A stretch of 62,695 bases of DNA from contig NIVC01004054.1 of assembly GCA_002269645.1 (NCBI GenBank), forward strand, positions 1 through 62,695, given 5' to 3'. Under the pieces are notes generated by a model that searched no databases, had not been told where the DNA came from, and saw only the letters and a list, made by a program, of their open reading frames with translations. The position numbers and the translations under genes are program-made. Shown one piece after another: positions 2,460 through 53,824 of the stretch. How positions within the stretch are numbered: the first letter of the stretch is position 1; each line of letters begins with the position of its first letter. The DNA is from Macrostomum lignano. Lineage: Eukaryota.

Positions 2460-16693
<14,234 letters not shown>

Positions 16694-17660: not shown

Positions 17661-18299
17661 AAAGTTAACAGACGAGTGAAGGTGAGCCCTCCTGCTCAGT
17701 AGTAGTAAGTAGGAGGAACGCTGCAGTTCCCAGAGATCCTGAGTATAGGATAAGCTTATGGGAATCGCGGCTTCCCATAAGCAGATTAACAAATCCGGCT
17801 GTTATAAACTCAGCCTTGCTGCTGGGGAATCTTCTTTCTTGGGCTGTGAGATCATTATTGAGCATTGATCCCCCAGCTCGAATCGATGGGCTGCTGCAGC
17901 CGACATGGAGGCTGAAGTGCTCCATCTGCTCTCCCCTTCAATTCCAGCCACACCCGGAGCCTCGAATGCCCCCCGCTCAAAGGTGCACAATTAATTTTAC
18001 TGCTCAACTGACGAGCAGCAGCTGATCAGGCCCCAATTAGGGTGCAGGGGGATCTGGCCCAGACTCCCGACATAGTTGGCTTCGAAACTTTCTTAGTCCC
18101 GTTCGTCGCTCTTATTCGCAGTGGGAATTACGGAACTGCATTAACTAGCTTGCCCGCCTTTATCTGGGTGAGTCCTCTGCCTTTCAGGAGCTTGTATCTC
18201 TCTTGTCTCTCGATCAGCCTTTCTTCTCACTTGCTGTATGATATTAATCGGCTATTGACTCTCATCTCAATCTCTTCTCACCCCCATCTTCAATATCTC

Positions 18300-19240
18300 T
18301 CCGACTCCCTGTCCTTCTTACCCCTCCCTCTCACCCCTGTCTACTTCTCACCCAGCTGTCTCTCACTCGCCCCTGTCTCACTCTCACCTCTGTCTCCCTC
18401 TCACCCCTGTCTCCCTCTCACCACTGTTTCCCTCTCACTGTCTCCCTCTCACTGTCTCCCTCTCACCCTGTCTCCCTCTCACCCTTGTTTCCCTCTCACC
18501 TCTGTCTCTCTCTCACCCTGTCTCCCTCTTACCCCTGTCTCCCTCTCACCCCTGTCTCCCTCTCACCACTGTTTCCCTCTCACTGTCTCCCTCTCACCCT
18601 GTCTCCCTCTCACCCTGTCTCCCTCTCACACCTGTCTCCCTCTCACACCTGTTTCCCTCTCACCCCTGTCTCCCTCTCACCCTGTCTCCCTCTCACCCTG
18701 TCTACTCACCTAACTGTCTCCCACTCACCACTGTCTCCCTCTCACCCTGTCTCCCTCTCACCCCTGCTTCCCTCTCACCCCTGTCTCCCTCTCACCCTGT
18801 CTCCCTCTCACCCTGTCTACTCACCTAACTGTCTCCCTCTCACCACTGTCTCCCTCTCACCCTGTCTCCCTCTCACCCTGTCTACTCACCTAACTGTCTC
18901 CCTCTCACCACTGTCTCCCTCTCACCCTGTCTCCCTCTCACCCTGTCTACTCACCTAACTGTCTCCCTCTCACCACTGTCTCCCTCTCACCCTGTCTCCC
19001 TCTCACCCTGTCTACTCACCTAACTGTCTCCCTCTCACCCTGTCTCCCTCTCACTTCTGTCTCCCTCTCACCACAGTCTCCCTCTCACCCCTGTTTCCCT
19101 CTCACCACTGTTTCCCTCTCACCACTGTCTCCCTCTCACCACAGTCTCCCTCTCACCCCTGTTTCCCTCTCACCCCGTCTCCCTCTCACCCCTGTCTCCC
19201 TCTCACCCCTGTCTCCCCCTCACCCCTGTCTCCCTCTCTC
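18300..19240. repeat. ~17-nt pyrimidine-rich satellite (ccctctcacccctgtct)
   Basis: Direct inspection. Confidence 0.95.
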
Positions 19241-19689
19241 CCAACCCCACTTCACTGTACCCCTATTTTTTCCCTAATGCCCCACCCTGCGGTCATTCGC
19301 TCTTCGAACTGCGGTCTTCGCTCAGTGCTACAAATCTCGCTCTCTAGAAGCCTGCCGACCTTCCAGCTTCTTCTCTTCATCGTAGCAACTACGCCTTCGC
19401 GTGCCCACAAGTTGGCTTGGCAGGAAAAATAGCGCAATTTTAGCTACATCAGTGCAGCCAACCCACAGCCGTGTGGACAGGGGAAGTTTTCTAATGCCCT
19501 GCTGGCGTCTCTTGCCGCCTGTCCCGGGTGACTGAGAAGGTCAATGGAAAACAGAACTGCAAACTGTTTGATGAGCTGACAGCAGCTTTTGCAGCATGGG
19601 TGGGGAAAGTGCAGCCTAATAACCTTAGTTAAATTCAATTGTTAAACTCGAGTAACTTCGGTCACGAACCTCCGGTAACTTCTGCTACT

Positions 19690-20060
19690 AACCTCAAGTA
19701 GCTTTAGTTACTGACCTCAAGTAGATTTAGTTACTGACCTCAAGTAGCTTTAGTTACTGACCTCAAGTAGATTTAGTTACTGACCTCAAGTAGCTTTAGT
19801 TACTGACCTCAAGTGGATTTAATTACTGACCTCAAGTAGATTTAGTCACTGACCTCAAGTAGATTTAGTTACTGACTTCAATTAGCTTTAGTTACTGACC
19901 TCAAGTAGATTTAGTTACTGACCTTAAGTAGATTTAGTTACTGACTTCAATTAGCTTTAGTTACTGACCTCAAGTAGATTTAGTTACTGACCTTAAGTAG
20001 ATTTAGTTACTGACTTCAATTAGCTTTAGTTACTGACCTCAAGTAACTTTAGTTACTAAC
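19690..20060. repeat. 23-nt minisatellite
   Basis: Unit ctcaagtagctttagttactgac. Confidence 0.94.
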
Positions 20061-20699
20061 TTTGTGGAACTTCGGCTTTTAAACTACAGTAACTGCAGTT
20101 ACTGACTCCAGCTCTTTCAGTTCAAAACACCAGACGCGATTTTCACGCTTGTCTGCCCCGGTGTACTTTTAGGTTTTTTCATGCTCTTTGTTTATTTTTC
20201 CCAACACCCAGCCACTCACTGACGATTGCGCAAAGCATGACAGCTGTGCTCGGCTTGTCGTCGGGCTGCGGGCTGCCTTGAGCTGACAAGCAGGCATATT
20301 AGACTAGTTAATCCTCCAAGGCTTTGCCAGACCCACCGAAGCAAGCGAAGACGGCGAGCCATTTCTTTGGATCTTATCGTTAGCAGAGAAAATTGACAAA
20401 TCCTTTATCTGACGCAGTACGTGAAAAGCAATCGAGCATTTCTTTTTACTGTAAGCACTCGTAATAAAACACGCGGGGATTATCACACACGGACCTCAAA
20501 AATCGAAAAATTAGAAATGCGAGCATCCAAGAGATCAGATATATTTGTGGTTTGGCGTAATTAACGTTTGCTAATTAGAGCAGCAAAATAGTGCTTGATT
20601 TCTCTGTAAAAAATTTAGAAGCCGCTAGCGCAGAACAATATTTCATTTACCACACCGATAGATCCACCTCAGTTTCCTCTTTAATAACACAAACAATAT

Positions 20700-21905
20700 T
20701 TTCTGTCCTCCGAAAACACCCACCTCACTCCCATCTTTAAAAACACCCACCCCATTCTCTGTCCTCCAAAAACACCCACCTCACTCCCATCTTTAAAAAC
20801 ACCCACCCCATTCTCTGTCCTCCAAAAACACCCACCTCACTCCTATCTTTATAAACACCCACTCCATTCTCTATCCTCCAAAAACACCCACCTCACTCCC
20901 ACCTTTTAAAACACCCACCCCATTCTCTGTCCTCCAAAAACACCCACCTCACTCCCATCTTTAAAAACACCCACTCCATTCTCTGTCCTCCAAAAACACC
21001 CACCTCACTCCCATCTTTAAAAACACCCACCCCATTCTCTGTCCTCCAAAAACACCCACCTCACTCCCATCTTTAAAAACACCCACCCAATTCTCTGTCC
21101 TCCAAAAACACCCACCTCACTCCTATCTTTATAAACACCCACTCCATTCTCTATCCTCCAAAAACACCCACCTCACTCCCACCTTTTAAAACACCCACCC
21201 CATTCTCTGTCCTCCAAAAACACCCACCTCACTCCCATCTTTAAAAACACCCACTCCATTCTCTATCCTCCAAAAACACCCACCTCACTCCCACCTTTTA
21301 AAACACCCACCCCATTCTCTGTCCTCCCAAAACACCCACCTCACTCCCATCTTTAAAAACACCCACCTCATTCTCTGTCCTCCAAAAACACCCACTTTAC
21401 TCCCATCTTTAAAAACGACTGCCCCATTCTCTGTCCTCCAAAAACACCCACCTCACTCCCATCTTTAAAAACACCCACCCCATTCTCTGTCCTCCAAAAA
21501 CACCCACCTCACTCCCATCTTTAAAAACATCCACCCCATTCTCTATCCTCCAAAAACACTCACCTCACTTCCATCTTTAAAAACGCCAGCCCATTCTCTG
21601 TCCTCCAAAAACACCCACCTCACTCCCAACTTTAAACACCCACCCCATTCCTGTCCTCCAAAAACACTCACCTCACTGCCATCTTTAAAAACGCCAGCCC
21701 TATTCTCTGTCCTCCAAAAACACCCACCTCACTCCCAACTTTAAACACCCACCCCATTCTCTGTCCTCCAAAAACACCCACCTCACTTCCATCGTTAAAA
21801 ACACCCACCCCATTCTCTGTCCTCTAAAGACACCCAACTCACTTCTATCTTTAAAAACACCGAAAAACACTGAAAACACCCATTCTCTGTCCTCCAAAAC
21901 ACCCA
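20700..21905. repeat. ~56-nt dimeric satellite, ~21 copies
   Basis: Unit aaaaacacccacctcactcccatctttaaaaacacccaccccattctctgtcctcc, built from two related halves. Confidence 0.95.
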
Positions 21906-22829
21906 CCTCACTCTCATGACACTGCCGCATTCCCTCTGAAGTCGCCCGCATCAATCTACTCGAGACTGTCCATCAATTAAGAAGCCCTCATATCAGGGCA
22001 GGATTATTCCTGGCCTCTTCACGCCCATCAAATCGTTGATGCGGCCCTCCGGCTCCCGAGGCTCACCGGCCCAGCCGAGGCGGAACTGGAAGTGACACTG
22101 ACAATTATTGGATAATGAGGGCGAAGGCTGGGGTGAGGACAGGGTGGGCTCCGAAAATTCCAGTGTATACACGCATTTAAAAGCAAGCAACTATCTCCGG
22201 GCGAGAGAAGATGCCGGTAGTGATGAGCCGTGATGCGCAGTTCAGTGACGCACAAGGGGCCCTGTTTTCTTTTTTCTTGCTCAGCGCAACGGGCTTAAAT
22301 CTATGAGTTAATCCACTCCAACCTTTCTTTGATGACCCCATTTCATTTTGTCCCAATATTTTTATTACCTTATATGCTTTACTTGATCGTATAAATTTTG
22401 CAGTTTCGAAAGCTTCTTTCTCAGCTGCGGCTCCGGAGTCTAATCTCAGCTAATCTCTTGTGAGCCTAAATTAGCCCCCCCTTGACAACAAGCAGCCCCC
22501 GCCAATCGCAATCAGTTTTCCAAAGGACCTGAAAACGCAATCGGAAACCAAAGAAAGGTGTGAGAGCATCTAACCTCCTCTTGTTCTCGTTTTCCTAAAA
22601 ATAGTGCCAACTCTTTGATAAAGCTGTTTGATGAAGCAGCTTTGATAAAGCAGGCTACTGATATTCCAAAGTCACAAAGTGGCGCATCTAACTCAAAAAG
22701 TGGCGCATCTTACTCACAAAGTGGCGCATTCGACCCACAAAGTGGCACATTTGACTCAGTCACCTCTGGCGTCAGGAGCGCACATGATTGTGCCTAGCTG
22801 TTATCCCCAAAACTCACCGTCGTATCCGC

Positions 22830-25165: not shown

Positions 25166-34763
<9,598 letters not shown>

Positions 34764-35730
34764 ATGGTAGAAACTCGCCTATCTGATTGAGCCCCTGCAC
34801 CTGTTGAATGTCTGACTCTGGTTTGAAGAGCATATCAACTAGTCAGTGTCAATTTATTTTAGTTTTCTCTGTTGTCAGAAAGTTGTCAAAGTTGATTTTT
34901 GATCTTACTGCTTTTGTAACTTAGCCTGCATTGCACTCCATTGAAATTAGATGCTTCATACTAGAGTTACAGTACTAGTGTTACATCAAAGTGTTACAAC
35001 CCACAAAATTATTGTCAAGAATACAGTAACATTACTATTATTTCATGCATCTGCCCAAGACGACCCTGCAGTTTGTCAGGTAACGATCTGTCAATATCTG
35101 CTTTCTCATGCAGACACTGAACTCAACTGACTGTGATTGTCTCAATTGGCGAATTTCTCTGTCCTGGAGCTCACTGAAGCTTTGCAAACTCAATAAATTC
35201 TGCAGCTCGGCACGACAGTAATTCCTATATTACTTCCTCGTTGTGACGAATATCGAGTTTTGTGACTTAAGTCAGTCAGAATCTGAAATATGGAATATGC
35301 AATTAGAACTCTGGCACGTTGGCTAGATAGGATTTTGTAGGCTAATTAACAACTAGACATTCTGTATCAGCATCCTTAAGCTTTAGGCAACATATTTGAC
35401 ACGGTCTATATAGCAGCTTTGGCCTTTATTATCCAGATATATTAACGTGACAGAACAACAAGCACTCAGCAGCTTGCAGATACACGTCACAATAATTGTT
35501 TCTCGAACCTCCCGAGTCTATACTCTCTTCATTAGACAAAACAGGTCACATATTTGTTGTTAGCTCCATCAGCTTCTATTCTCATTTTCTTGACTCTACT
35601 CAGCACTTGAACACTTCATCGCCATCTGACAGGAGTAGTTCCATCAGCTCAAACAGTCTTCTTGGCCAACTGGACAACTATCAGGAGGGTTCAGGCTATG
35701 CCTAAGATTAAATACGATAGATACCGGTAA

Positions 35731-36420: not shown

Positions 36421-37150
36421 TTCTGTAGTTGACTGATTTCTTATTTTTTAGTTATAAAAATTGTCGAGACGTTTTATGGAAGGAAAAATTATTTTATGGC
36501 TACCAGAATTTCACTTTCTCTAATATCCATGGACTAAAATTGTGAGTATGATCTATGAGATACTCTATTAGCCCTTTAGATTTAGTCGCAATAATTAAAA
36601 ACTAATTAAAGAAAGCAAGAAGCACTGAATGGAGTCGCTCGCATTAGCAGAGACTATTGGACGGCATTGGGCTTGTGCTTGGAATATGCCGACTTAGTGC
36701 ACAGTTCACTGCCTTGGAACTCCTGAACAGACTGCGGTCCCGGCGTCGTGTTAAATATCGCTTGATGGTCTTTCTCTAATTGGCACTTTAAGCTTATGTA
36801 GTACGAGATGCGACGTACGCTTGGGTCGACATGATACAGTCCACTCTGACTTGTATTTGAAAAATAGTCTATGGTCATAGACTGACTACCTCCACCCGAG
36901 CTGTTCTACCGAGACTGCGTGTTATTGCCTTTCTAGACCATAGACTACTAGCCTATAGGGAAGTCAATGCATTCATTTGCAGTCGGGATGTAGTGGTATA
37001 ACATGCGAGCGCCTGTTAAAGGAGGAGCCGGCCCAAGTTTCTGAGCATCCCTACTTCAGAACAATATACCATTGTATATATACTTTTAGCACTTGCATTT
37101 CACAGTCAAGATTGCTTTAAAAATGTATGCACACTTCATATTAGTTAATA

Positions 37151-38408
37151 TGTAGTGCATGCGCCCTTGTCAGTTGGCAGGGCGCGTTGCACTTTGGGGC
37201 TGGTTGGGGGGTTGGCGGGCGTGGCAGGGTTTGGCCGCCGGCCGGGCTTTGCGCGTGCCCCTCCCCAGCCGTGCCCCTGCCCCGTGCTCAGGGCTGGTTG
37301 GCTGCGGCCGGGCCAGCTTTGGCGCGGGTGCAGCCCCTCCCCCTTAGGCGGGGTTTTGATTGGCTGGGCCGGCGTGGTTTGTTTTGGTGAGCTTAGCCGG
37401 TGGGGCCGTCTGCCCCAGGGTTTGGGTGCTATTTATGGTGCGACTCTGGCTCTTGCCCACCTCCTGCGTGCTTTTTGTGTTTTGGTGTGCTCCGAGAGTG
37501 CAAGCGCGAGACCTGATAAAAGAAACAGCAACATTAGCTACTTCGATAAAAGAAACAGCAACATTAGCTACTTCGATAAAAGAAACAGCAACATTAGCTA
37601 CTTCGATAAAAGAAACAGCAACATTAGCTACTTCGATAAAAGAAACAGCAACATTAGCTACTTCGATAAAAGAAACAGCAACATTAGCTACTTCGATAAA
37701 AGAAACAGCAACATTAGCTACTTCGATAAAAGAAACAGCAACATTAGCTACTTCGATAAAAGAAACAGCAACATTAGCTACTTCGATAAAAGAAACAGCA
37801 ACATTAGCTACTTCGATAAAAGAAACAGCAACATTAGCTACTTCGATAAAAGAAACAGCAACATTAGCTACTTCGATAAAAGAAACAGCAACATTAGCTA
37901 CTTCGATAAAAGAAACAGCAACATTAGCTACTTCGATAAAAGAAACACAATAGCCTAATCGAGAAGAGTCTTGGAGAATTAAGAAGAAGTCGGAAACTGC
38001 GCTTGAGACCTGCGAATAATAAACGGTGAACAGTCATCTGGCCACTGGTAAGCCGCCTGCTGTTTGAGTCCTTTCTTTTCGGGAAGCTTGCTAGGCCGAA
38101 TTCTTGCCAGAGCGTCATAACGCCGGGAGACCATATAGCTTCTGTAGTACGGTACCGTTTACCATATATATTGCGTACGCCCTACGGTATAGAGAATAGA
38201 AGCACTCGAGAGTGTCACCACACCTCGAGCCGCAGCGTGAACTCTGAGTGTCACAACACCAGAGGGATCGAATTATTATCGCAGAGCGTCGCCACGCCTG
38301 CTCGTCGTATTCATAAAAGTACAGACAGAGCGTCACAACGCCTGTTATATCACATATAATATATATTGTACTCGGGACTGGGCACCCAAGCCGACCCGGG
38401 TCACAACA
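37151..38408 (+). mobile_element. Solo LTR (Gypsy-like), 1258 bp
   Basis: Begins TGTAG and ends CAACA, flanked on both sides by AATA (37147-37150 and 38409-38412) = 4-bp TSD. Internal order: GC box/ATTGG (~37347-37364), TATTTAT (~37429), AATAAA (~38017). Confidence 0.72.
37516..37947. repeat. Perfect 30-nt tandem array (14 copies) inside the solo LTR
   Basis: Unit gataaaagaaacagcaacattagctacttc; no variant seen. Confidence 0.98.
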
Positions 38409-39391
38409 AATACAAGCTAACTAAATAAACTGTTAGGATTTATTGTGATTGACTGTCAATCCCTCCTCCTTCAGTTCGTTGCGTGCTACGCGCGTGCAGG
38501 TGGCACTTGTGACTGTTGCTGAGTTTACTTAGATCTTGAAGCAGCTATGCTGCCAGAGAACTGTTTTAAAAATAGAACCTACACGCTTCACTACATATCC
38601 ATAGCCACCCTTCTCTCTCTCTCAAAAAGTTTTTTCTTGAATGCAATTGCGCGTTTAATTATAGCTCATAAATTGAATTGGCTCCAGTGTACACCACACT
38701 ATACACGGTAGCAAAGTGGGGTAATGTACACATCGCATCTGATATAGCTACGAGTAATGGATATTTTAGACGTTAGTTCCATGTTGGCCGATCCTGTGCC
38801 TTTATCTCACATTGCTATCGAATCTGCACTGATTAGCAATAGGCCTAATTGGCATTGGCACTGTGACCAGTTTTTATCTGCATATCCAAATGAATTGGCG
38901 CAATCAGGCCGCTGCCCTGATTGAACTGTGCCTCCTCCTAGGTAAGTTATAATTGGCCTGTAAATTGGCTTCGAGTTATCGCTTATTGTCAGGTAGCCGG
39001 CACTGGCATGAAAGCGGCGCGGCGGCGGCATCAAACGAACGCCCCGCGATGGCGAGTTCCAAACACACCGGGGGGGGGGGGTTCTACCCCTCCTTCCTTT
39101 GATCTGTGGGACGCCATAAACTCACGGATGCAAAAGAGGCTGCGTGGAAATCACACGCGATGCGGGCCCGTATAGGAAAGAACAGAAACACCGGCTGAAC
39201 AGATAAGACCTAGAGGTGGTAAACTACTCGTAATTACGTACAGTGCGAATGCGAAGGTAAAAGAATCGCAGATGTTATCGATGCGTTTGTATTGTAAGGC
39301 ACAATCTAATTTTGTTTTTTGTTCTTCTGTCCTCTTCGAAAAATCTAAGAGATCATTGAGCAAATTTTCGAGGCTTTACTAAAAATGCATG

Positions 39392-40493: not shown

Positions 40494-43400
40494 GAGCTGC
40501 AGTCAACCAGTCATCCGGCAACTCGCGGAGCCTGAACGAACTCAAAGTGAGGTCATGGGCCTGTCTCGTGGCGACCGGTGCAGCCGCAGCAGCCACAGCG
40601 CCTGTCAAAAGGGCCTGGAGTATCGCGGCATTGACTGCACCTGTCACAGGTGTCCGCAAGCCGGCGAGAGGCCCAGCCATCCGGTCCAGAGAGTCAGGCT
40701 GCGCTGCATCAGCCTCTTGAGTCTGTGCGAGCCACCCGAGGTCACAACTGCGAGTGTGTTTGACTTCGGAATGGAAATCGGTCAGGAGAGGAGTGGGTCA
40801 GAAGAGAGTGGGTCAGGAGAGAGTGGGTCAGGAGAGGAGTGGGTCAGGAGAGAGTGGGTCAGGAGAGAGTGGGTCAGGAGAGGAGTGGATCAGGAGAGGA
40901 GTGGATCAGGATCGAGGAGTGGGTCAGAAGAGAGTGGGTCAGGAGAGAGTGGGTCAGGAGAGAGTGGGTCAGGAGAGAGTGGGTCAGGAGAGGAGTGGGT
41001 CAGGAGAGGAGTGGATCAGGATCGAGGAGTGGGTCAGAAGAGAGTGGGTCAGGAGAGAGTGGGTCAGGAGAGAGTGGGTCAGGAGAGGAGTGGGTCAGGA
41101 GAGAGTGGGTCAGGAGAGAGTGGGTCAGGAGAGAGTGGGTCAGGAAAGAGTGGGTCAGGAGAGGAGTGGGTCAGGAGAGAGTGGGTCAGGAGAGGAGTGG
41201 GTCAGGAGAGAGTGGGTCAGGAGAGAGTGGGTCAGGAGAGGAGTGGGTCAGGAGAGGAGTGGGTCAGGAGAGAGTGGGTCAGGAGAGGAGTGGGTCAGGA
41301 GAGGAGGGGGTCAGGAGAGGAGTGGATCAGGATCGAGGAGTGGGTCAGAAGAGAGTGGGTCAGAAGAGAGTGGGTCAGGAGAGAGTGGGTCAGGAGAGAG
41401 TGGGTCAGGAGAGAGTGGGTCAGGAGAGGAGTGGGTCAGGAGAGGAGTGGGTCAGAAGAGAGTGGGTCAGGAGAGGAGTGGGTCAGGAGAGGAGGGGGTC
41501 AGGAGAGGAGTGGATCAGGATCGAGGAGTGGGTCAGAAGAGAGTGGGTCAGGAGAGAGTGGGTCAGAAGAAAGTGGGTCAGGAGAGAGTGGGTCAGGAGA
41601 GGAGTGGGTCAGGAGAGAGTGGGTCAGGAGAGAGTGGGTCAGGAGAGGAGTGGGTCAGGAGAGAGTGGGTCAGGAGAGAGTGGGTCAGGAGAGAGTGGGT
41701 CAGGAGAGAGTGGGTCAGGAGAGAGTGGGTCAGGAAAGAGTGGGTCAGGAGAGGAGTGGGTCAGGAGAGAGTGGGTCAGGAGAGAGTGGGTCAGGAGAGG
41801 AGTGGGTCAGGAGAGAGTGGGTCAGGAAAGAGTGGGTCAGGAGAGAGTGGGTCAGGAGAGGAGTGGGTCAGGAGAGAGTGGGTCAGGAAAGAGTGGGTCA
41901 GGAGAGGAGTGGGTCAGGAGAGAGTGGGTCAGGAGAGAGTGGGTCAGGAGAGGAGTGGGTCAGGAAAGAGTGGGTCAGGAGAGGAGTGGGTCAGGAGAGA
42001 GTGGGTCAGGAGAGAGTGGGTCAGGAGAGGAGTGGGTCAGGAGAGAGTGGGTCAGGAGAGGAGTGGGTCAGGAGAGAGTGGGTCAGGAAAGAGTGGGTCA
42101 GGAGAGGAGTGGGTCAGGAGAGAGTGGGTCAGGAGAGGAGTGGGTTAGGAGAGAGTGGGTCAGGAGAGGAGTGGGTCAGGAGAGGAATGGGTCAGGAGAG
42201 AGTGGGTCAGGAGAGGAGTGGGTCAGGAGAGAGTGGGTCAGGAGAGGAGTGGGTCAGTGCTTTAATAAAAAGAGTAATTTAGCTGCATCATGAGGTCTAT
42301 CTCAATAATAAAATCTGAGCAAGGCAGAAAGTGTTCGAAATTTACTTACTAAGTAGTGGAAAGGTGGAACGAACGCTGCTCAAACCGAGACAGACACGGG
42401 GACCCACATTTCTTACAGGTGCTCTATACACAACTTACAGGGTAAAGGTGCTGCAGCGAAGGCTGTTATTTTGTCTCAGTAGTGCTATTGATTGAGCTGA
42501 AAGTGTTGAAAGCACAATTAAAGATGAGTTCAATAAGAGGGCTCTGTCCGCTAAACGCTGATTGAAAAACAGGTTAATATGTGGGGAGGCGAAACTTCCA
42601 GCTAAAACGTATAAGCGACTGCATCGCAATTAATGACTTTGATTACAGGTAAACAGCAGTCACGAGAGAATTTCCAAGAAAATATTTCTTTAGCAATTCG
42701 GGTCTTTGTTTGTTGCTTTTGACTGACTTGTGAAAATTTGAGACAACGTCAGGGCTCCCTTTTATTATTATCGATTTGAGCTGCCCTGTAAGCACCTGCT
42801 CCAGTAGAAGGGACCGCGGAATTGTTTTCGAAGAAGTTTTAGACTGTCTTGACACTCCGTATGTGAATGTTTCCTTGTAATTAATAGTTCACTGCAAACT
42901 TTTATCGACTGCACGCTGATCTGTGCCATAGCGACCACTTAATCTGAGTCAGTTATCAGCTGATCTAAGCCAAAGACACGGGTCTGGGCCATAGACATTA
43001 GCTTACCTAAGCCAAAGGGTCTGGGCCATAGGCACTATAGCTTATCTAAGCCAAAGACACGGGTCTGGACCATTTTTTTTAGAGGCAGGGGGTTTGTGTG
43101 CACCCTGGCGCACTTTAAGCGACATAGGCACACAACCGGCGAGAGGCATTACTGCCCATTCCGCCGACTCCCCTGAGCAGGCATACAAGCGCGCGGATAC
43201 GTACGCAGGCACACACTCACACAGGAGTGTACAGCGGCCCTAACTTTATTTTATCGTTAGGCATTTACACTTCACTGCGCCTTGGGCGGTTGGCTCTCAA
43301 GGCCGTTAATTGCACGAGCAGAGCCAAGCCGAGATTCCAATTCAGCCCCAAATTAATGTGACTGCACTTGGAATCGAGCCTGGGCCGCTGGTACACCAGA

Positions 43401-46400
43401 GCCTGCGCTAGACCGCTGGGCTACGGCCCCCCAAAAGGTCTGGACCATAGAGATTAGCTTATCTAAGCCAACGGGTCTGGGCCATAGACATTATAGCTTA
43501 TCTAAGCCAAAGACATGGGTCTGGGCCATAGACACTATAACTTATCTGGGCCATAGACACTATAGCTTATCTGGGCCATAGACACAAAGAGACGGTATGT
43601 TCTGCACCATAAACAACAGCTGATTTGGGTGATTGATAAATTTCGTAGAAAGTCGCACTTTTGAAGCAAGTTCACATATTTTGATAATCTACAGTAGCAC
43701 TCATTTTTCTGAAGTTTGCAAGGAGCTTAGAGTGAGCGCCAAGCGTGTGGTGCATAAATACCGGTACATAGTCATGAATACATAGTAAAACGACGGAGAC
43801 GGACGGGAGTGCAATCTAATTGTAACTGAGGTGAGAAGTGAGAGCTCAAGAACTTTCCGAGTTAACCAAACCGTCTGCCCCAGTCGGTTGGAAATCAAGC
43901 TGACAAGCTCTAAGAGGTACTCGACACGGAGACGACTGGGTCGAGAGAGCACTTTGAGCTAATATGACTCATGAAGTAGTCATTAACAATGAGAGCATAT
44001 GCCGCATGCCAAATGCGGTCGTGGGTTCCCCAGCGCGAAGGAATCTGCGGGTATTTTTAGCCCAATTACTAGCAATCTTCGCCCCCCGATGGGGGGCATC
44101 TAGATAGAATCTCTGGCACTCTACAAGTATCAAAAAGACGGCCAAATAAAGCCTTCACATAGACAATAGAAAAACTGCTCAAATGAAGTGCAATGCAAAA
44201 AAATATCCCAGGACAGCAAGCAACCCCCCAGATAGCAAGCACCCCCAGATAGCAAGCATCCACCTAATAGCAAGCACCCTTAGATAGCAAGCATCCCCAG
44301 ATAGCAAGCACCCTTGGATAGCAAGGCAAGCATCTCCAGATAGCAAGCACCCCCAGATAGCAGGCACCCCAGATAGCAAGCATCCACCTAATAGCAAGCA
44401 CCCCAAGATAGCAAGCATCCACCTAATAGCAAGCACCCTTAGATAGCAAGCACCCCCAGATAGCAAGCACCCCCAGATAGCAAGCACGTCAAGTAGCAAG
44501 CATCTCTAGATAGCAAGCACCCCCAGATAGCAGGCACCCCAGATAGCAAGCATCCACCTAATAGCAAGCACCCCAAGATAGCAAGCATCCACCTAATAGC
44601 AAGCACCCTTAGATAGCAAGCACCCCCAGATAGCAAGCACCCCCAGATAGCAAGCATCTCCAGAGTAGCAAGCATCTCTAGATAGCAAGCACCCCCAGAT
44701 AGCAGGCACCCCAGATAGCAAGCATCCACCTAATAGCAAGCACCCCAAGATAGCAAGCATCCACCTAATAGCAAGCACCCTTAGATAGCAAGCACCCCCA
44801 GATAGCAAGCACCCCCAGATAGCAAGCATCTCCAGATAGCAAGCACCCCCAGATAGCAAGCATCCACCTAATAGCAAGCACCCCCAGATAGCAAGCATCC
44901 ACCTAATAGCAAGCACCCCCAGATAGCAAGCATCCACCTAATAGCAAGCACCCCCAGATAGCAAGCACCCCCAGATAGCAAGCACCCCCAGATAGCAAGC
45001 ATCTCTAGATAGCAAGCACCCCCAGATAGCAGGCACCCCAGATAGCAAGCATCCACCTAATAGCAAGCACCCCCAGATAGCAAGCATCTCCAGATAGCAA
45101 GCACCCCCAGATAGCAGGCACCCCAGATAGCAAGCATCCACCTAATAGCAAGCACACCCAGATAGCAAGCACCCCCAGATAGCAAGAACCCCCAGATAGC
45201 AGGCACCCCAGATAGCAAGCATCCACCTAATAGCAAGCACCCCCAGATAGCAAGCACCCCCAGATAGCAAGCACCCCCAGATAGCAAGCACCCCCAGATA
45301 GCACGCATCTCCAGATAGCAAGCACTCCAAGATAGCAGGCACCCCAGATAGCAAGCATCCACCTAATAGCAAGCACCCCCAGATAGCTAGAACCCCAAGA
45401 TAGCAAGCATCCCCCCAGATAGCAAGCACCCCCAGATAGCACGCATCTCCAGATAGCAAGCACTCCAAGATAGTAGGCACCCCATTTATGTTTGACATGG
45501 TAGCTGTTTTGTGTCTGACATGGTGGCTCTTTAATGTTTGAGCTGGTGGCTCTTTTATGTTTGACATGGTGGCACTTTAATGTCTGAAATGGAGTCATGT
45601 ATACGCTTGACATGGTGACTCGTAGATGTTTGACAAAGTGGCTCTTTTATGTTCGACATGTGGCTCTTTAATGTTTGACATGGTGGCTCTTTAATGTTTG
45701 ACATGGTGGCTCTTTAATGTTTGACATGGTGGCTCTTTAATGTTTGACATGGTGGGTCTTTAATTTATGACATGGTGGCTCTTTTATGTTTGACATGATG
45801 GCTCTTTAATGTTCAACATGGTGGCTGTTTAATGTTTGTTATGTAGTCATATGTATATGTTTTACATGGTGGCTCTTTTATGTGTGACATGGAGTCACGT
45901 ATATATTTGACATGGAGTCACATATGTTTGACATGGTGGCTCTTTAGTGTTCGATATGGTGGCTCTTTAATGTTTGACATGGTGGCTCTTTTATGTTTGA
46001 CATAGTGGCTCTTTAATGTCTGACATGGTGGCTCTTTAATGTTTGACATGGTGGCTCTTTTATGTTTGACATGATGGCTCTTTAATGTTCGACATGGTGG
46101 GCTGTTTAATGTTTGTTATGTAGTCATATGTATATGTTTTACATGGTGGCCCTTTTATGTGTGACATGGAGGCCCTTATATATTCGACATGGAGTCACAT
46201 ATGTTTGACATGGTGGCTCTTTAGTGTTCGATATGGTGGCTCTTTAATATTTGACATGGTGGCTCTTTAATGTTTGACATGGTGGCTCTTTAATGTTTGA
46301 CATGGTGGCTCTTTTATGTTCGACATGTTGGCTCTTTAGTGTTTGACATGGCTCTTTAATGTTTGACATGGTGGCTCTTTTATGCTTGACATGGTGGCTC

Positions 46401-49400
46401 TTTAATGTTCGACATGGTGGCTCTTTAATGTTTGACATGGTGGCTCTTTTATGCTTGACATGGTGGCTCTTTAATGTTCGACATGGTGGCTCTTTAATGT
46501 TTGACATGGTGGCTCTTTTATGCTTGACATGGTGGCTCTTTTATGTTCGACATGGTGGCTCTTTTTTGTTCTACATGGTAACTCTTTTATGTTTGATACG
46601 GTGGCTTTTTAATATCTGACATTGTGGCTCTTCTATGTTTGACATTGTGGCTCTTTTATGTTCGACATGGTGGCTCTTTAATGTTTGACATGGTGGCTCT
46701 TTAATGTACGACATAAAGGTTCGTTTATTTTCGACATGGTGGCTCTTTTAGGTTTGACATGGTAGCTCTTTTATGTTCGACATGGTGGCTCTTTTAGGTT
46801 TGACATGGTGGCTCTTTTAGGTTTGACATGGTAGCTCTTTTATGTTCGACATGGTGGCTCTTAAATGTTTCACATGATGGCTCTTAAATGTCTTACATGG
46901 TGGCTCTTTTATGTTTGACAATGTGGCTCTTTAATGTTTTACATGGCGGCTCTTTTATGTTCGAAATGGTGGCTCTTTAATGTTCGACATGGTGGCTCTT
47001 TAATGTTTGACATGCTAGCTCTTTAATGTTCGACATAGTGGCTCTTTTATGTTTGGCATGGTGGCTCTTTAATGTTCTTCATGGTGGCTCTTTTACGTTT
47101 GACATGGTGGCACTTTAATGTTCGACGTGGTGGCTCTTTAATGTTCGAAATGGTGACTCTTTAATGTTTCACATGGTGGCTCTTTAATGTTTGACATAGA
47201 GTCACGTATTTGTTTTACATGGTGCCCATGTAATGTTTGACATGGTGCCTCTTTTATGTTTGACATTGTGCTTTTTTATGTTTAGCAGTTTCGTGTTTTC
47301 AAGGTGTTTTATAAAAAAATTATTTTGCACTACTAAGATTCGAACCCAGGTCGCTACGTTGGCAGTCCAGTCTGTTCGTATCTAGGCTATCTCTTTTCAA
47401 TTGGAGTACATGAATTGTGGCCCTTATAATTAAATTCTTACAGCAAGTCAATTGGGGTAAAAAGTTATGACATAATCAATTTCTCAGTCAGCCAGTATCA
47501 GTCTCAGTTCAAGTTAGCAATATTGGTTACGCAATTTTAATCAAGTCGTGTGTGCATTTCTTCGGCACTGTTTTCAACTTGTTGTGATGCAATCTTTATG
47601 ACAATCAGAATTCAGCCAGTCAGTTTTTTTCTCTAGCATTCTTACAATGAATTTTAGGTCGAAAGAGCTGCTTGACCTTTGCAAAAAAGCATGTTTTTCG
47701 AATATTTAATCCCTTTATCATTGAGCAATTTTTTAGCCAAGATGCATGTACCGTCCCAGGAAAATTTCTGATCGAATGGTGCAAGTTTGAAGAAAATCGG
47801 TTGAGCCATTTTTTCTGAAATCTATCGCATACCTACCCACATACAGACAACTCATTTTTAGTATATAGGATGCTCCTGCCGTTCAGATATCTGGTCTAAA
47901 TGTCTGAGCAGTGTCTGAGCACTAATCCTTGTGGAGTTCAATAGAGCAGAACAAGAAATACGAGTCCGGAGTCTGCAAACCGCCGGGGTCTGAGTCGTCT
48001 GAAAGATATTCGCTATTACCAGATACAGCATATAATGCCACATGCAGCTAAAGTCCTACCTGAATCAAGCGTGTGGATGTCGGTAACAGTTTACGGTCAT
48101 TAGCGTTGACCAAGAATTGCACTGTATGGAAATGTGTATGAGATAATTGGTTTTCACTTCTGCAAAGGATTTATCAGGTCAGCTAAAGCCCTTTAAACAC
48201 GTATCTTCAGGTGAGCTAGCCCTACAGGTAACACCACTACCTAACACCAAATTTAGTATGCAGGTAAGATAAGACAGAAAAGTCAGGTACCGTGAACCAC
48301 ATCCGGGACGATAAGGTCACAAATCATCGATTATCAGATGGAATGAAACCACCAAATAATCAGATTGGATTTCATCAGATGTGCTAACCTGCGATGAACT
48401 CAATACTCAAATTTGCAGGCCCCCTCAACCAGCTGTCCTGCCAGAGGGCCTACCTGGGTAGCGAGGCAGCCTGCGGCACGGCTGCGGTCCGAGGCTGCCC
48501 GGCCGACAGCTACCTGACCCGGGGTTGCTCCTGTGAGATGTGCCCGAGCCGAACGACTTTCAGCAGCGGCTTCGAACTGGACTGCCTGCAGCTGCTGGGC
48601 TTCTGCCAAGGTGCCCAACTTCTTGCGGGCGGCGAGACTGGGACAAATCCTGACCAGGCGACGACTACCCTCAGCGAACCAAGTGTGATTGTTAGGACAC
48701 TATCGACAGCTGTTTCCGGTTTGTCAGTTATGGATGAGCTTCTTAGTGCCTAATGCCTCCCGGTTCCCTCCCGGTTCCCTCCCGGTTCCCTCCCGGTTCC
48801 CTCCCGGTTCCCTCCCGGTTCCCTCCCGGTTCCCTCCCGGTTCCCTCCCGGTTCCCTCCCGGTTCCCTCCCGGTTCCCTCCCGGTTCCCTCCCGGTTCCC
48901 TCCCGGTTCCCTCCCGGTTCCCTCCCGGTTCCCTCCCGGTTCCCTCCCGGTTCCCTCCCGGTTCCCTCCCGGTTCCCTCCCGGTTCCCTCCCGGTTCCCT
49001 CCCGGTTCCCTCCCGGTTCCCTCCCGGTTCCCTCCCGGTTCCCTCCCGGTTCCCTCCCGGTTCCCTCCCGGTTCCCTCCCGGTTCCCTCCCGGTTCCCTC
49101 CCGGTTCCCTCCCGGTTCCCTCCCGGTTCCCTCCCGGTTCCCTCCCGGTTCCCTCCCGGTTCCCTCCCGGTTCCCTCCCGGTTCCCTCCCGGTTCCCTCC
49201 CGGTTCCCTCCCGGTTCCCTCCCGGTTCCCTCCCGGTTCCCTCCCGGTTCCCTCCCGGTTCCCTCCCGGTTCCCTCCCGGTTCCCTCCCGGTTCCCTCCC
49301 GGTTCCCTCCCGGTTCCCTCCCGGTTCCCTCCCGGTTCCCTCCCGGTTCCCTCCAGGTTCCCTCCAGGTTCCCTCCCGGTTCCCTCCCGGTTCCCTCCCG

Positions 49401-52400
49401 GTTCCCTCCCGGTTCCCTCCCGGTTCCCTCCCGGTTCCCTCCCGGTTCCCTCCCGGTTCCCTCCCGGTTCCCTCCCGGTTCCCTCCCGGTTCCCTCCCGG
49501 TTCCCTCCCGGTTCCCTCCCGGTTCCCTCCAGGTTCCCTCCAGGTTCCCTCCCGGTTCCCTCCAGGTTCCCTCCAGGTTCCCTCCAGGTTCCCTCCAGGT
49601 TCCCTCCCGGTTCCCTCCCGGTTCCCTCCCGGTTCCCTCACGGTTCCCTCCCGGTTCCCTCCCGGTTCCCTCCCGGTTCCCTCCAGGTTCCCTCCCGGTT
49701 CCCTCACGGTTCCCTCACGGTTCCCTCACGGTTCCCTCCCGGTTCCCTCCCGGTTCCCTCCCGGTTCCCTCCCGGTTCCCTCCCGGTTCCCTCCCGGTTC
49801 CCTCCCGGTTCCCTCCCGGTTCCCTCCCGGTTCCCTCCCGGTTCCCTCCCGGTTCCCTCCCGGTTCCCTCCCGGTTCCCTCCCGGTTCCCTCCCGGTTCC
49901 CTCCCGGTTCCCTCCCGGTTCCCTCCCGGTTCCCTCCCGGTTCCCTCCCGGTTCCCTCCCGGTTCCCTCCCGGTTCCCTCCCGGTTCCCTCCCGGTTCCC
50001 TCCCGGTTCCCTCCCGGTTCCCTCCCGGTTCCCTCCCGGTTCCCTCCCGGTTCCCTCCCGGTTCCCTCCCGGTTCCCTCCCGGTTCCCTCCAGGTTCCCT
50101 CCCGGTTCCCTCCCGGTTCCCTCCCGGTTCCCTCCCGATTCCCTCCCGATTCCCTCCCGGTTCCCTCCCGGTTCCCTCCCGGTTCCCTCCAGGTTCCCTC
50201 CCGGTTCCCTCCAGGTTCCCTCCAGGTTCCCTCCAGGTTCCCTCCAGGTTCCCTCCAGGTTCCCTCCCGGTTCCCTCCCGGTTCCCTCACGGTTCCCTCA
50301 CGGTTCCCTCCCGGTTCCCTCCCGGTTCCCTCCCGGTTCCCTCCCGGTTCACTCCCGGTTCCCTCACGGTTCCCTCACGGTTCCCTCCCGGTTCCCTCCC
50401 GGTTCCCTCCCGGTTCCCTCCCGGTTCCCTCCCGGTTCACTCCCGGTTCCCTCCCGGTTCCCTCCCGGTTCCCTCCAGGTTCCCTCCCGGTTCCCTCCCG
50501 GTTCCCTCCCGATTCCCTCCCGGTTCCCTCCCGGTTCCCTCCCGGTTCCCTCCAGGTTCCCTCCCGGTTAACTCCAGGTTCCCTCCAGGTTCCCTCCAGG
50601 TTCCCTCCAGGTTCCCTCCCGGTTCCCTCCCGGTTCCCTCCCGGTTCCCTCCCGGTTCCCTCACGGTTCCCTCCCGGTTCCCTCCCGGTTCCCTCCCGGT
50701 TCCCTCCCGGTTCACTCCCGGTTTCCTCCCGGTTCCCTCCCGGTTCCCTCCCGGTTCCCTCCAGGTTCCCTCCAGGTTCCCTCCAGGTTCCCTCCCGGTT
50801 CCCTCCCGGTTCCCTCACGGTTCCCTCACGGTTCCCTCCCGGTTCCCTCCCGGTTCCCTCCCGGTTCCCTCCCGGTTCCCTCCCGGTTCCCTCCCGGTTC
50901 CCTCCCGGTTCCCTCCCGGTTCCCTCCCGGTTCCCTCCCGGTTCCCTCCCGGTTCCCTCCAGGTTCCCTCCGGTTCCCTCCCGGTTCCCTCCCGGTTCCC
51001 TCCCGATTCCCTCCCGATTCCCTCCCGATTCCCTCCCGGTTCCCTCCCGGTTCCCTCCCGGTTCCCTCCCGGTTCCCTCCAGGTTCCCTCCCGGTTCCCT
51101 CCCGGTTCCCTCCCGGTTCCCTCCCGGTTCCCTCCCGGTTCCCTCCCGGTTCCCTCCCGGTTCCCTCCCGGTTCCCTCCCGGTTCCCTCCAGGTTCCCTC
51201 CCGGTTCCCTCCCGGTTCCCTCCCGGTTCCCTCCCGATTCCCTCCCGATTCCCTCCCGGTTCCCTCCCGGTTCCCTCCCGGTTCCCTCCAGGTTCCCTCC
51301 CGGTTCCCTCCAGGTTCCCTCCAGGTTCCCTCCAGGTTCCCTCCAGGTTCCCTCCAGGTTCCCTCCCGGTTCCCTCCCGGTTCCCTCACGGTTCCCTCAC
51401 GGTTCCCTCCCGGTTCCCTCCCGGTTCCCTCCCGGTTCACTCCCGGTTCACTCCCGGTTCCCTCCCGGTTCCCTCCCGGTTCCCTCCCGGTTCCCTCCCG
51501 GTTCCCTCCAGGTTCCCTCCCGGTTCCCTCCCGATTCCCTCCCGGTTCCCTCCCGGTTCCCTCCCGGTTCCCTCCCGGTTCCCTCCCGATTCCCTCCCGG
51601 TTCCCTCCCGGTTCCCTCCAGGTTCCCTCCCGGTTCCCTCCCGGTTCCCTCCCGGTTCCCTCCAGGTTCCCTCCAGGTTCCCTCCAGGTTCCCTCCCGGT
51701 TCCCTCCCGATTCCCTCCCGATTCCCTCCCGGTTCCCTCCCGGTTCCCTCCCGGTTCCCTCCAGGTTCCCTCCCGGTTCCCTCCAGGTTCCCTCCAGGTT
51801 CCCTCCAGGTTCCCTCCAGGTTCCCTCCCGGTTCCCTCCCGGTTCCCTCCCGGTTCCCTCCCGGTTCCCTCACGGTTCCCTCCCGGTTCCCTCCCGGTTC
51901 CCTCCCGGTTCACTCCCGGTTTCCTCCCGGTTCCCTCCCGGTTCCCTCCCGGTTCCCTCCAGGTTCCCTCCCGGTTCCCTCCCGGTTCCCTCCCGGTTCC
52001 CTCCCGGTTCCCTCCCGATTCCCTCCCGGTTCCCTCCCGGTTCCCTCCCGGTTCCCTCCCGATTCCCTCCCGGTTCCCTCCCGGTTCCCTCCCGGTTCCC
52101 TCCCGGTTCCCTCCCGGTTCCCTCCAGGTTCCCTCCCGGTTCCCTCCAGGTTCCCTCCCGGTTCCCTCCCGATTCCCTCCCGGTTCCCTCCCGGTTCCCT
52201 CCAGGTTCCCTCCCGGTTCCCTCCAGGTTCCCTCCAGGTTCCCTCCCGGTTCCCTCCAGGTTCCCTCCCGGTTCCCTCCCGGTTCCCTCACGGTTCCCTC
52301 CCGGTTCCCTCCCGGTTCCCTCCCGGTTCCCTCCCGGTTCACTCCCGGTTTCCTCCCGGTTCCCTCCCGGTTCCCTCCCGGTTCCCTCCAGGTTCCCTCC

Positions 52401-53675
52401 CGGTTCCCTCCCGGTTCCCTCCAGGTTCCCTCCCGGTTCCCTCCCGATTCCCTCCCGGTTCAATTGGGAATTCGGTTTATGCCGTTGGGAACTGTAATTA
52501 GTGGACAATATTAATCATTGAAAGTGATTACAGAATCTAAATTTCATGGCGTCACAATGTCTGGATCTCTTTGCCATGACACAGGTGTTTTTTCACCCGT
52601 CAATCAGGCCATTGTTTGGAACTATCGACTTCAATTCAAAATCGGAAGCAAAAATCAGAAAGACAGTAAAATTTCGATCGCTGAAAACATTTTTTCTGAA
52701 AAACTTGAATTGCAATTCTGCACTCAAGAACCGACGTGCGGCACCTGGGTTACTGAGGACGATGAAACAAACAATGATTTCTTTAATTTCCTGATCATTA
52801 GGGAAAGCAGACAAGGGAATTTCAAATTCAGGTGGCAATCTCCAATATTGCTAGCTGACAATGTCCTGCCCTTAATGAGATGACCGCTAATAATGAGAGT
52901 GCGTGCTCACATAGGAAATCACAACAATAGCTAGCAGGCAACTTCATTTTGAAAAATTAGTTTCGCGTTGCGTGGTGACCTACAAATCGACTAGTACATG
53001 TTTTTACATGCGTATTTTTATAATTTCGCAAGCCCAAAAAATGCCCTGTTTCCTTTTTTCCTATCATGATAAACACCAGCGCTGTTGGGTGTTGGCTATA
53101 AAATCTGTGCTAGTGGGGTGTTGGCTATAGAATCTGTGCTAGTGGGGTGTTGGCTATAAAATCTGTGCAAGTGGGGTGTTGGCTATAAAATCTGTGCTAG
53201 TGGGGTGTTGGCTATAAAATCTGTGCTAGTGGGGTGTTGGCAATAAAATCTGTGCTAGTGGGGTGTTGGTTATAAAATCTGTGCTAGTGGGGTGTTGGCT
53301 ATAAAATCTGTGCTAGTGGGGTGTTGGCTATAAAATCTGTGCTAGTGGGGTGTTGGCAATAAAATCTGTGCTAGTGGGGTGTTGGCAATAAAACCTGTGC
53401 TAGTGGGATGTTGGCAATAAAACCTGTGCTAGTGGGGCTATAAAATCCGATTTAGAGGTTGGCTGTAATTTTTTTCATTTAAGCCAATTCAATTTAAACT
53501 CGCAGGCAACACTTGGCGTGTGCTGCTCATCATCCTCTGCGTTCTGCTCATCGCCACTCCCATTGTCGCAGTGTTTGCTGTTCAGAGGCTTCAGCAGCAG
53601 CGCTACGCCTCAGCCTCGCTTAACGATGCGGCGGCCAGAGTGCCTCTGGATGACAAGAGTGGAGCCAGCATCTGA
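40494..53675 (+). CDS. Predicted single-pass membrane protein with two 8-Cys modules, Ser/Thr stalk, TM helix and short tail (5' exon not found)
   Basis: Exon A 40494-40780 (cag|...ATC G|gtcagg), exon B 48419-48718 (gcag|GC...TCC G|gtttgt), exon C 53506-53675 (cgcag|GC AAC ACT TGG...TGA). Both junctions are phase 1 and in frame. A and B share Cys spacing. C encodes [21 protein letters not shown] followed by QRLQQQRY. Confidence 0.7.
40780..42257. repeat. 15-nt purine-rich satellite starting at the exon A donor
   Basis: Unit gggtcaggagagagt, with a recurring ggatcaggatcgaggagt higher-order marker. Confidence 0.97.
42960..43580. repeat. ~40-nt repeat interrupted by a SINE-A insertion
   Basis: gggtctgggccatagacattagcttatctaagccaaagacac units on both sides of the SINE. 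Confidence 0.85.
43074..43436 (-). mobile_element. tRNA-derived SINE family A, copy with TSD
   Basis: Minus-strand head GGGGCCGTAGCCCAGCGGTCTAG...GGCTCGATTCC (A and B boxes), A7 tail, and a 12-bp TSD GGTCTGGACCAT (43062-43073 and 43437-43448). Confidence 0.8.
44212..47280. repeat. Two abutting satellites: ~17-nt gatagcaagcaccccca (44212-45478) and ~23-nt tttgacatggtggctctttaatg (45485-47280)
   Basis: Direct inspection. Confidence 0.95.
47325..47392 (-). mobile_element. Degenerate tRNA(Gly-like)/SINE head
   Basis: Intact T-arm ctgggttcgaatcttag and a CTGCCAA loop; the other stems are imperfect, so it is not a functional tRNA. Confidence 0.5.
47690..47870 (+). mobile_element. Possible non-autonomous Helitron/Helentron (Lep1/DINE-like) 3' end
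   Basis: caagtttgaagaaaatcggttgagcc...acatacagacaactc..tttagtatatagga resembles the 3' signature of these elements. Recognised from memory of the pattern only. Confidence 0.35.
48757..52460. repeat. 11-nt satellite (ccggttccctc)n, 3.7 kb
   Basis: ~335 units; accounts for all the 1250-aa [11 protein letters not shown]-type ORFs. Confidence 0.99.
53085..53440. repeat. 29-nt minisatellite before exon C
   Basis: Unit gtggggtgttggctataaaatctgtgcta. Confidence 0.94.
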
Positions 53676-53824
53676 TTGTCGAGGCAAAGCGAGCTCCATC
53701 AACTCTACGGCAAAAGATGTATTTTTTCTTATCAATTTGCACAGACTGCATGTATGGTTTTGTACTGAAGCATGTGCTGAAATGAGAATAAAACACAACA
53801 GATGCTACTGTAATGCCACATAAT

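Follow-up and report, generated by a model that had tools for sequence, protein, structure and literature searches.

Small members of the tumour necrosis factor receptor (TNFR) superfamily that lack a death domain, such as Drosophila Wengen and the vertebrate Fn14/BCMA-type receptors, are single-pass proteins of type I (or type III) with one or two cysteine-rich modules and a short tail. The same general build is found in the intact product of a four-exon gene of the flatworm Macrostomum lignano, another copy of which lies in the stretch of DNA analysed here (contig NIVC01004054.1 of assembly GCA_002269645.1, 62,695 nt; "the window" refers to this whole stretch, and features are on its forward strand unless stated otherwise). 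We give a probability of about 0.7 to the reading that the copy in the window is a young pseudogene or null copy, that is, a duplicate disabled not long ago, as opposed to a new receptor that had gone unnoticed.

In the canonical platyhelminth TNFR (SmTNFR-like, NGFR-like), four cysteine-rich domains (CRDs) are combined with a death domain, and M. lignano is reported to have a single such receptor (Bertevello et al. 2020, PMC7519573). TNF ligands are also encoded by this worm (PMC7519573), for which a preprint counts 16 Wengen-like receptors and 6 TNF ligands ('Eiger' homologues) (bioRxiv 10.1101/2024.07.27.603686). The protein discussed here resembles the canonical receptor in being a flatworm type I membrane protein with a TNFR-type label. 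It differs in that its modules number two and are atypical, its tail is 30 aa long and a death domain is lacking; these features assign it to a different gene.

An earlier note on the window had described three exons, at 40494-40780, 48419-48718 and 53506-53675, as encoding a hidden single-pass receptor-like protein with a duplicated, unrecognised 8-cysteine module. Their in-phase splicing was borne out by the sequence. An AG acceptor precedes each of the three, GT follows the first two, and TGA closes the third. Joining them produced a single 251-aa open frame, in which the Ser/Thr-rich stalk, the transmembrane (TM) helix and the quoted tail (30 aa) were all present. So was the RGD tripeptide in module A; in the absence of supporting evidence for a role, we treated it as a chance occurrence. 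As judged from the paralogue described below, the three exons are exons 2-4 of the four-exon gene, whose product is a small surface protein rich in cysteine.

A search of 5.8 billion proteins gave one match, M. lignano BOX15_Mlig018243g1 (PAA82741.1, A0A1I8HF80), which is 262 aa long and 93% identical. Its automatic name in UniRef/UniProt is 'TNFR-Cys domain-containing protein'. The locus of this intact paralogue on NIVC01000455.1 (L001) followed the window colinearly for about 28 kb, with a DNA identity of 94-99%, and the differences were mainly in satellite copy number and a few insertions. This is in agreement with duplicated blocks totalling 180 Mb (identity of 95% or more) that are reported for the M. 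lignano genome (PMC5730564). The two loci correspond in order in all four exons, in intron positions, in flanking sequence and in satellites, and the proteins are 93% identical over exons 2-4. The window copy differs in the absence of 7 bp from exon 2, the resulting frameshift, the loss of Cys37 and a GTGTGT donor.

The twin's assembly was annotated from RNA-seq transcript assembly (StringTie/TACO/TBONE/TransDecoder; PMC5730564). Since the colinear twin locus carries a transcript-derived annotation, the window holds a further copy of a gene annotated earlier on transcript evidence. The gene is already known, in that the intact twin has been deposited in GenBank and UniProt and automatically labelled, and it remains an uncharacterised orphan. 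Full-text searching of the literature for Mlig018243 brought up no papers.

When 1.84 billion representatives were searched exhaustively with phmmer, no relatives outside M. lignano emerged; the matches were confined to M. lignano entries from the same locus, apart from one spurious match (P0004) in the SGNTW/TM region. Word-indexed homologue searches with the protein and with a module profile likewise returned only same-locus M. lignano entries. The search for paralogues suggested in the earlier note thus yielded near-identical copies of one locus, and no wider family was found by phmmer or with the module profile. The proposed new lineage-specific receptor family stood as to single-pass type I build and restriction to M. 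lignano, but not as to novelty; by these alignments the 'family' comes down to a single locus, of which 2-3 near-identical duplicated blocks of the genome each hold a copy. Pfam recognises nothing in the protein. The gene is neither hidden nor unlabelled, the intact copy having been deposited as a TNFR-Cys protein.

The missing signal-peptide exon that the earlier note had predicted was located by tblastn with the paralogue at 38890..38941. This exon 1 contains the ATG and the signal peptide MNWRNQAAALIELCLLLG, and ends in phase 1 at the donor GTAAGT. Its encoded residues are identical to those of the paralogue (18 of 18), and its nucleotides to L001 10001-10052 (52 of 52). Exon 2 (40494..40753, aligned to L001 12237-12503) encodes module A, with eight cysteines in the intact paralogue and seven here. 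It is 260 nt long in the window versus 267 nt in the intact copy, where it is a phase 1-1 exon. Exon 3 (48419..48718; 300 nt, phase 1-1) encodes the eight cysteines of module B and the Thr/Ser-rich stalk, with 94% amino acid identity to residues 106-207 of A0A1I8HF80. Exon 4 (53506..53675), assigned by reading the sequence and by comparison with the paralogue, encodes the TM helix, the 30-aa cytoplasmic tail and the stop codon. About 110 nt 3' of the stop lies AATAAA (53787..53792), a candidate poly(A) signal. When applied to L001, the four-exon model translated to exactly A0A1I8HF80. The gene spans 14.8 kb in the window and 8.25 kb at L001, with longer intronic satellites in the former.

Of the bounds given for exon 2 in the earlier note, the acceptor at 40494 held but the donor at 40780 did not. 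The donor used in the transcript-derived model of the paralogue corresponds to window 40753/40754, which is 27 nt upstream of 40780/40781. The intact protein reads EVTTAS/PLNQL at the junction of exons 2 and 3, without the residues VFDFGMEIG that the intervening 27 nt (40754..40780) would encode. These residues are probably intronic, as they are in the paralogue model. The alternative donor at 40780/40781 reads ATCG/GTCAGG, and both donors are in phase. The exon 2 donor itself reads GCGA/GTGTGT in the window versus GCGA/GTGAGT in L001, and the change of GTGAGT to GTGTGT weakens it in the window copy.

Pairwise DNA alignment of exon 2 placed the absence of the 7 bp (CTCTGCC) between 40546 and 40547 of the window. 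The deletion removes the codon for Cys37, the first cysteine of module A (in LKLCRE of A0A1I8HF80; the intact protein reads LNELKLCREVMGL at this place), and shifts the frame by one base. Translation from the gene's own ATG ran into a premature TGA at 40718..40720. The coding sequence assembled with the exon boundaries of the paralogue was 782 nt long, frameshifted, and ended after 92 residues.

The frame followed by the earlier note, on the other hand, is open from the acceptor only in copies with the deletion, and in the intact copy it meets a TGA after 20 codons. It is connected with the signal-peptide frame only through the copy-specific 7-bp deletion. Because the signal-peptide exon ends in phase 1 and sets the other frame, the N-terminal 18 residues of the earlier reading are in the wrong frame. 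The C-x26-C start that had been given for module A is an out-of-frame artefact of the deletion, and module A of the intact copy starts with C-x11-C. From the comparison of the two copies, we regard the long frame-1 open reading frame (ORF) as a by-product of the 7-bp deletion. The lead-in to module A in the intact copy, LNELKLC, parallels LNQLSC of module B, which shows the intact form to be ancestral.

No rescue of the frame was found in the window copy. The exon 2 alignment contained no compensating insertion or deletion, and there was no frame-1 ATG between the upstream stop codon and Met 40555. The deletion creates a potential donor, GTGAGG. Reading of the sequence by eye found no acceptor for it at a frame-1 codon boundary beyond 5 nt, so that rescue by a micro-intron does not appear possible.

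The deletion frame was also present in two further M. lignano protein models in UniProt, A0A1I8IY03 (690 aa) and A0A1I8HD72 (95 aa). The last 86 residues of A0A1I8IY03 are 100% identical to the translation of window 40495-40752 in the deletion frame. The remainder of this model is a G protein-coupled receptor (GPCR), and it differs from the window and L001 alike at the same positions, suggesting that A0A1I8IY03 came from a further copy. A0A1I8HD72 starts in the deletion frame, changes frame three times relative to window 40495-40755, and enters a 23-bp satellite (45697-45714). It represents either a more decayed copy or an error-laden region of an assembly. Its automatic name is an odd one, 'Protein phosphatase 1 regulatory subunit 35'. 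Since the deletion recurs in sequences that are not identical, a one-off assembly error is an unlikely origin for it.

As in a non-processed duplicated pseudogene, the window copy carries a disabling lesion relative to an intact paralogue and retains all of its introns. In the course of events that we propose, a copy situated in a duplicated block (identity of 95% or more) of the kind typical of this genome would have lost 7 bp in exon 2. The loss would uncouple the signal peptide from the cysteine modules, with translation from the ATG ending after 92 aa. As the premature stop lies upstream of two exon junctions, the mRNA would be an expected target of nonsense-mediated decay. Because of the frameshift, translation that begins at the ATG of the window copy cannot yield the proposed receptor or send the modules to the secretory pathway. 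The earlier view of this copy as a working receptor is not supported by the frameshifted sequence. The divergence between the window and L001 was about 2% in the exons and 0.5-1.2% in unique intron sequence, which is compatible with relaxed constraint, the counts being too small to decide.

Several results weigh against this reading, or against the TNFR-like character that it allows the modules. Beyond the 7-bp deletion and the donor change, the ORF, the remaining cysteines, the splice sites and the stop codon are all intact, which means that inactivation is either recent or unproven. The window and the UniProt models could share an assembly, and this would weaken the independence of the evidence for the deletion. 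The coding exons of the window and L001 differ by 10 nonsynonymous and 6 synonymous substitutions (pN/pS about 0.55), and 16 substitutions are too few to be informative.

The other contrary results came from tests of the modules. At E<=10, a Pfam scan that included TNFR_c6 (PF00020) found nothing relevant in the joined window protein, in A0A1I8HF80 or in either module; the HMMER filters drop most matches above an E of about 0.1. Sequence and profile searches of the PDB found no TNFR and nothing meaningful. The PROSITE pattern PS00652, in the form C-x(4,6)-[FYH]-x(5,10)-C-x(0,2)-C-x(2,3)-C-x(7,11)-C-x(4,6)-[DNEQSKP]-x(2)-C, had 0 matches in A0A1I8HF80 versus 4 in the TNFR1 control. A hidden Markov model (HMM) of the TNFR CRD was built from 14 CRDs whose source sequences had been verified against PDB entries. 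Left-out TNFR CRDs scored 16-24 bits with this model, and unrelated cysteine-rich proteins scored below 0. Module A scored -0.4 bits, a value equalled by 407-519 of 1000 shuffles. Alignment of the modules to the TNFR CRD alignment by hhalign gave a probability of 0.9%. The AlphaFold2 models were of low confidence and unusable, with a mean pLDDT of 50 for A0A1I8HF80 (mostly below 50 in the ectodomain) and 39 for module B with a four-row alignment.

Two other matches were set aside in these searches. The Imm58 match in Pfam fell on the TM helix and was ascribed to chance. The best match in the PDB, OCM5 (E=0.43), covered the CxxCP stretch and was not meaningful. The known-domain check suggested in the earlier note thus gave no confident match in Pfam or the PDB, but the twin already bore the TNFR-Cys label in UniProt.

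In the intact paralogue, module A reads C-x11-C-x7-C-x10-C-x-C-x2-C-x17-C-x6-C. Module B has the spacing that had been quoted for it, C-x10-C-x7-C-x9-C-x-C-x2-CP-x12-C-x2-LL-x2-C, which ends as C-x13-C-x6-C in the same notation. Corrected in this way, module A is far closer to module B than in its earlier version, and an LNxL..C lead-in is common to both. The claim of a duplicated module was upheld. The two were alike beyond their cysteines (BLASTP E=6e-4), and the observed score was reached by 1 of 2000 full shuffles and by 22 of 2000 shuffles with the cysteines fixed.

Comparison with the small TNFRs without death domains gave a mixed picture. Cys3-Cys8 of both modules fit a relaxed A1-B2 pattern, C-x4-5-Y-x4-C-x-C-x2-C-x13-17-C-x6-C, with a conserved aromatic residue (CPADSY, CQKGLEY). 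With PS00652 both modules fail, as they have x4 where 5-10 residues are required and x13 or x17 where 7-11 are required. Module B scored 5.2 bits with the CRD HMM (18-22 of 1000 shuffles, p about 0.02), and only the half from CPADSY to CSCEMCP was aligned. In contrast to the known small receptors, the protein shows no significant sequence or profile similarity to TNFRs, carries two extra N-terminal cysteines in each module and has long C4-C5 loops. The sole positive evidence of a relationship to TNFRs is the UniRef name, which would imply a match to the PROSITE profile PS50050 (TNFR_NGFR_2). TNFR membership is unproven, and the modules may be either very divergent TNFR-like CRDs or a lineage-specific module.

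Whether the 8-cysteine module is a Macrostomum-specific fold unrelated to TNFR CRDs, with the TNFR-Cys label arising from a borderline profile match on CxCxxC, is a question to be judged apart from the readings of the window copy as a pseudogene, a functional gene or part of a fusion. We consider such a fold a serious possibility, though less probable than not. It would account for the empty Pfam scan, the PDB searches and the hhalign result, for the shuffle-like score of module A and the half alignment of module B, and for the absence of homologues outside M. lignano. It would also agree with the loops of 13 and 17 residues, longer than the 7-11 of PROSITE, and with the two additional N-terminal cysteines, which are absent from the canonical CRD. 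Against it stand the profile match implied by the UniRef name, the fit of Cys3-Cys8 to the relaxed A1-B2 layout with its aromatic residue, and the fact that invertebrate TNFRs are known to escape PF00020 (bioRxiv 10.1101/2024.07.27.603686). That the duplicated unit written as C-x10/11-C-x7-C-x9/10-C-x-C-x2-CP-x12/16-C-x2-LL-x2-C is a new extracellular fold restricted to Macrostomum, and not a TNFR CRD, seems to us unlikely. If it were, one would expect the intact paralogue to serve as a surface receptor peculiar to this lineage, such as a non-canonical partner of the expanded M. lignano TNF ligands, or an adhesion or reproductive recognition molecule.

The intact paralogue has the leader MNWRNQAAALIELCLLLG, one NQS sequon, 16 ectodomain cysteines, a Thr/Ser/Pro stalk, one TM helix and the 30-aa tail. 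Hydropathy peaked at residues of about 203-236 of A0A1I8HF80, with a hydrophobic segment at about 210-232. A type I topology (signal peptide, extracellular modules and one TM helix) is displayed by this protein but not by the window copy, in which the frameshift splits the leader from the modules. The 30-aa tail contained no Death domain in Pfam, and no TRAF-type motif was evident in it, although no formal scan for TRAF motifs was made.

We picture the intact BOX15_Mlig018243g1 as a small type I cell-surface glycoprotein with an ectodomain of two disulfide-rich modules. Exon 1 would supply the signal peptide, exon 2 module A, exon 3 module B and a stalk of the O-glycosylation type, and exon 4 the TM helix and the 30-aa tail. 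A symmetric phase 1-1 exon would have been duplicated in tandem to give the two modules, which would be at most very divergent TNFR-like CRDs in a protein without a death domain. Such a protein may bind a ligand through its modules and signal, if at all, by adaptor binding to the short tail, or it may be a decoy or an adhesion molecule. Should the homology to TNFRs be confirmed, it would be a divergent, death-domain-less TNFR-like protein of modest interest for flatworm TNF signalling. The importance of the locus lies mainly in its annotation, and the residual interest in whether the module is a new fold.

Returning to the window copy, it is unlikely, in our estimate, that this copy is functional. 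It might be so if the 7-bp gap were an assembly error or a segregating allele, or if the protein started at the internal Met 40555. In the latter case the TM helix would serve as a reverse signal anchor for membrane insertion of the product (MGLSRGDRC...). The frame-1 ORF is open for about 220 codons between Met 40555 and the normal stop and keeps 15 of the 16 ectodomain cysteines, and all the other splice sites are intact. The M. lignano assemblies are long-read based and repeat-rich (PMC5730564). A gap of 7 bp, however, is atypical of the homopolymer errors of long reads, and it recurs in A0A1I8IY03 and A0A1I8HD72, which differ elsewhere. Loss of the first cysteine of module A would leave an unpaired cysteine. 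Furthermore, translocation of a disulfide-rich N-terminal domain of about 165 aa without a signal peptide would be unlikely on general grounds.

Immediately upstream, in the same orientation, is a GPCR gene of the rhodopsin family (window 27948-34765), with exons at about 27948-28931, 30633-30731, 32884-33183 and 34623-34765. The last of these (34623..34765) is its last coding exon and ends with TAG at 34763-34765. No gene is listed for the GPCR in the equivalent stretch of L001.

The model A0A1I8IY03, a rhodopsin-type GPCR by Pfam (7tm_1, E=2.7e-28), joins the last exon of this gene, at GT/GTAGAT (34761/34762), to exon 2 at 40494. It could be taken to mean that the deletion copy is expressed as a GPCR fusion with the cysteine modules appended, the last GPCR exon being spliced into exon 2 before its stop. 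Besides the existence of such a model, with the perfect match over its last 86 aa, the GT at 34762-34763 shares bases with the stop codon of the GPCR, only the deletion copies have an open fusion frame, and M. lignano makes polycistronic precursor transcripts (PMC5730564). On the other side, the donor GTAGAT is weak, and its use just before a stop is typical of gene predictors that extend ORFs; A0A1I8IY03 is also a fragment with neither start nor stop. In the transcript-derived annotation, the downstream gene has an ATG exon of its own that is bypassed in the fusion, and the topology would put the disulfide modules in the cytosol. Because of the weak donor, the skipped ATG exon and the cytosolic position of the modules, the fusion is regarded as a gene-merging artefact enabled by the deletion, and we consider its expression highly improbable. 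Under the preferred reading of a recently disabled duplicate, the loss of a few bases from one of the duplicated copies of this flatworm gene has created a misleading long ORF. The earlier note was caught by it, as, apparently, was the automatic gene model in which it is fused to the adjacent GPCR.

The window is repeat-rich eukaryotic DNA, and Tandem Repeats Finder showed the introns of the gene to be mostly satellites. Intron 2 contains arrays with units of 15 bp (40780-42257), 17 bp (44215-45483) and 23 bp (45488-47283). Intron 3 contains the 11-bp unit CCTCCCGGTTC in 337 copies at 48756-52461, and a 29-bp unit at 53087-53437. The plain ORF list merges exon 2 into a 575-aa ORF that extends into the 15-bp satellite. 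These arrays agree with the earlier description of exons surrounded by satellites, one of them concealed within a repeat ORF.

Comparison of the window with L001 by blastn showed that window 44068-47870, with the 17-bp and 23-bp satellites of intron 2, is missing from L001. L001 in turn carries a 5.3-kb insertion downstream of the gene (L001 18927-24220), which is not in the window (site 54342/54343). Just upstream of exon 1, a 1.26-kb stretch of the window (37150-38409) is not in L001. Within it, a perfect array at 37515-37947 consists of 14.4 copies of a 30-bp tandem repeat, and the 100% identity between copies suggests a very recent expansion or insertion.

An element of about 370 bp was located in intron 2 of the window at 43066-43432 on the reverse strand and upstream of exon 1 in L001 at 8947-9313 on the forward strand. 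It thus had the opposite orientation and a different position in the two copies. Related repeats of 39-44 bp lie at 42980-43585, and the element is probably a small repeat of the mobile or dispersed kind.

Two blocks with an extreme asymmetry between the strands were also noted, with a GC skew of -0.48 to -0.61 at 18001-22000 and of -0.35 to -0.49 at 48001-52000. The skewed block at 48-52 kb is the CCTCCCGGTTC satellite.

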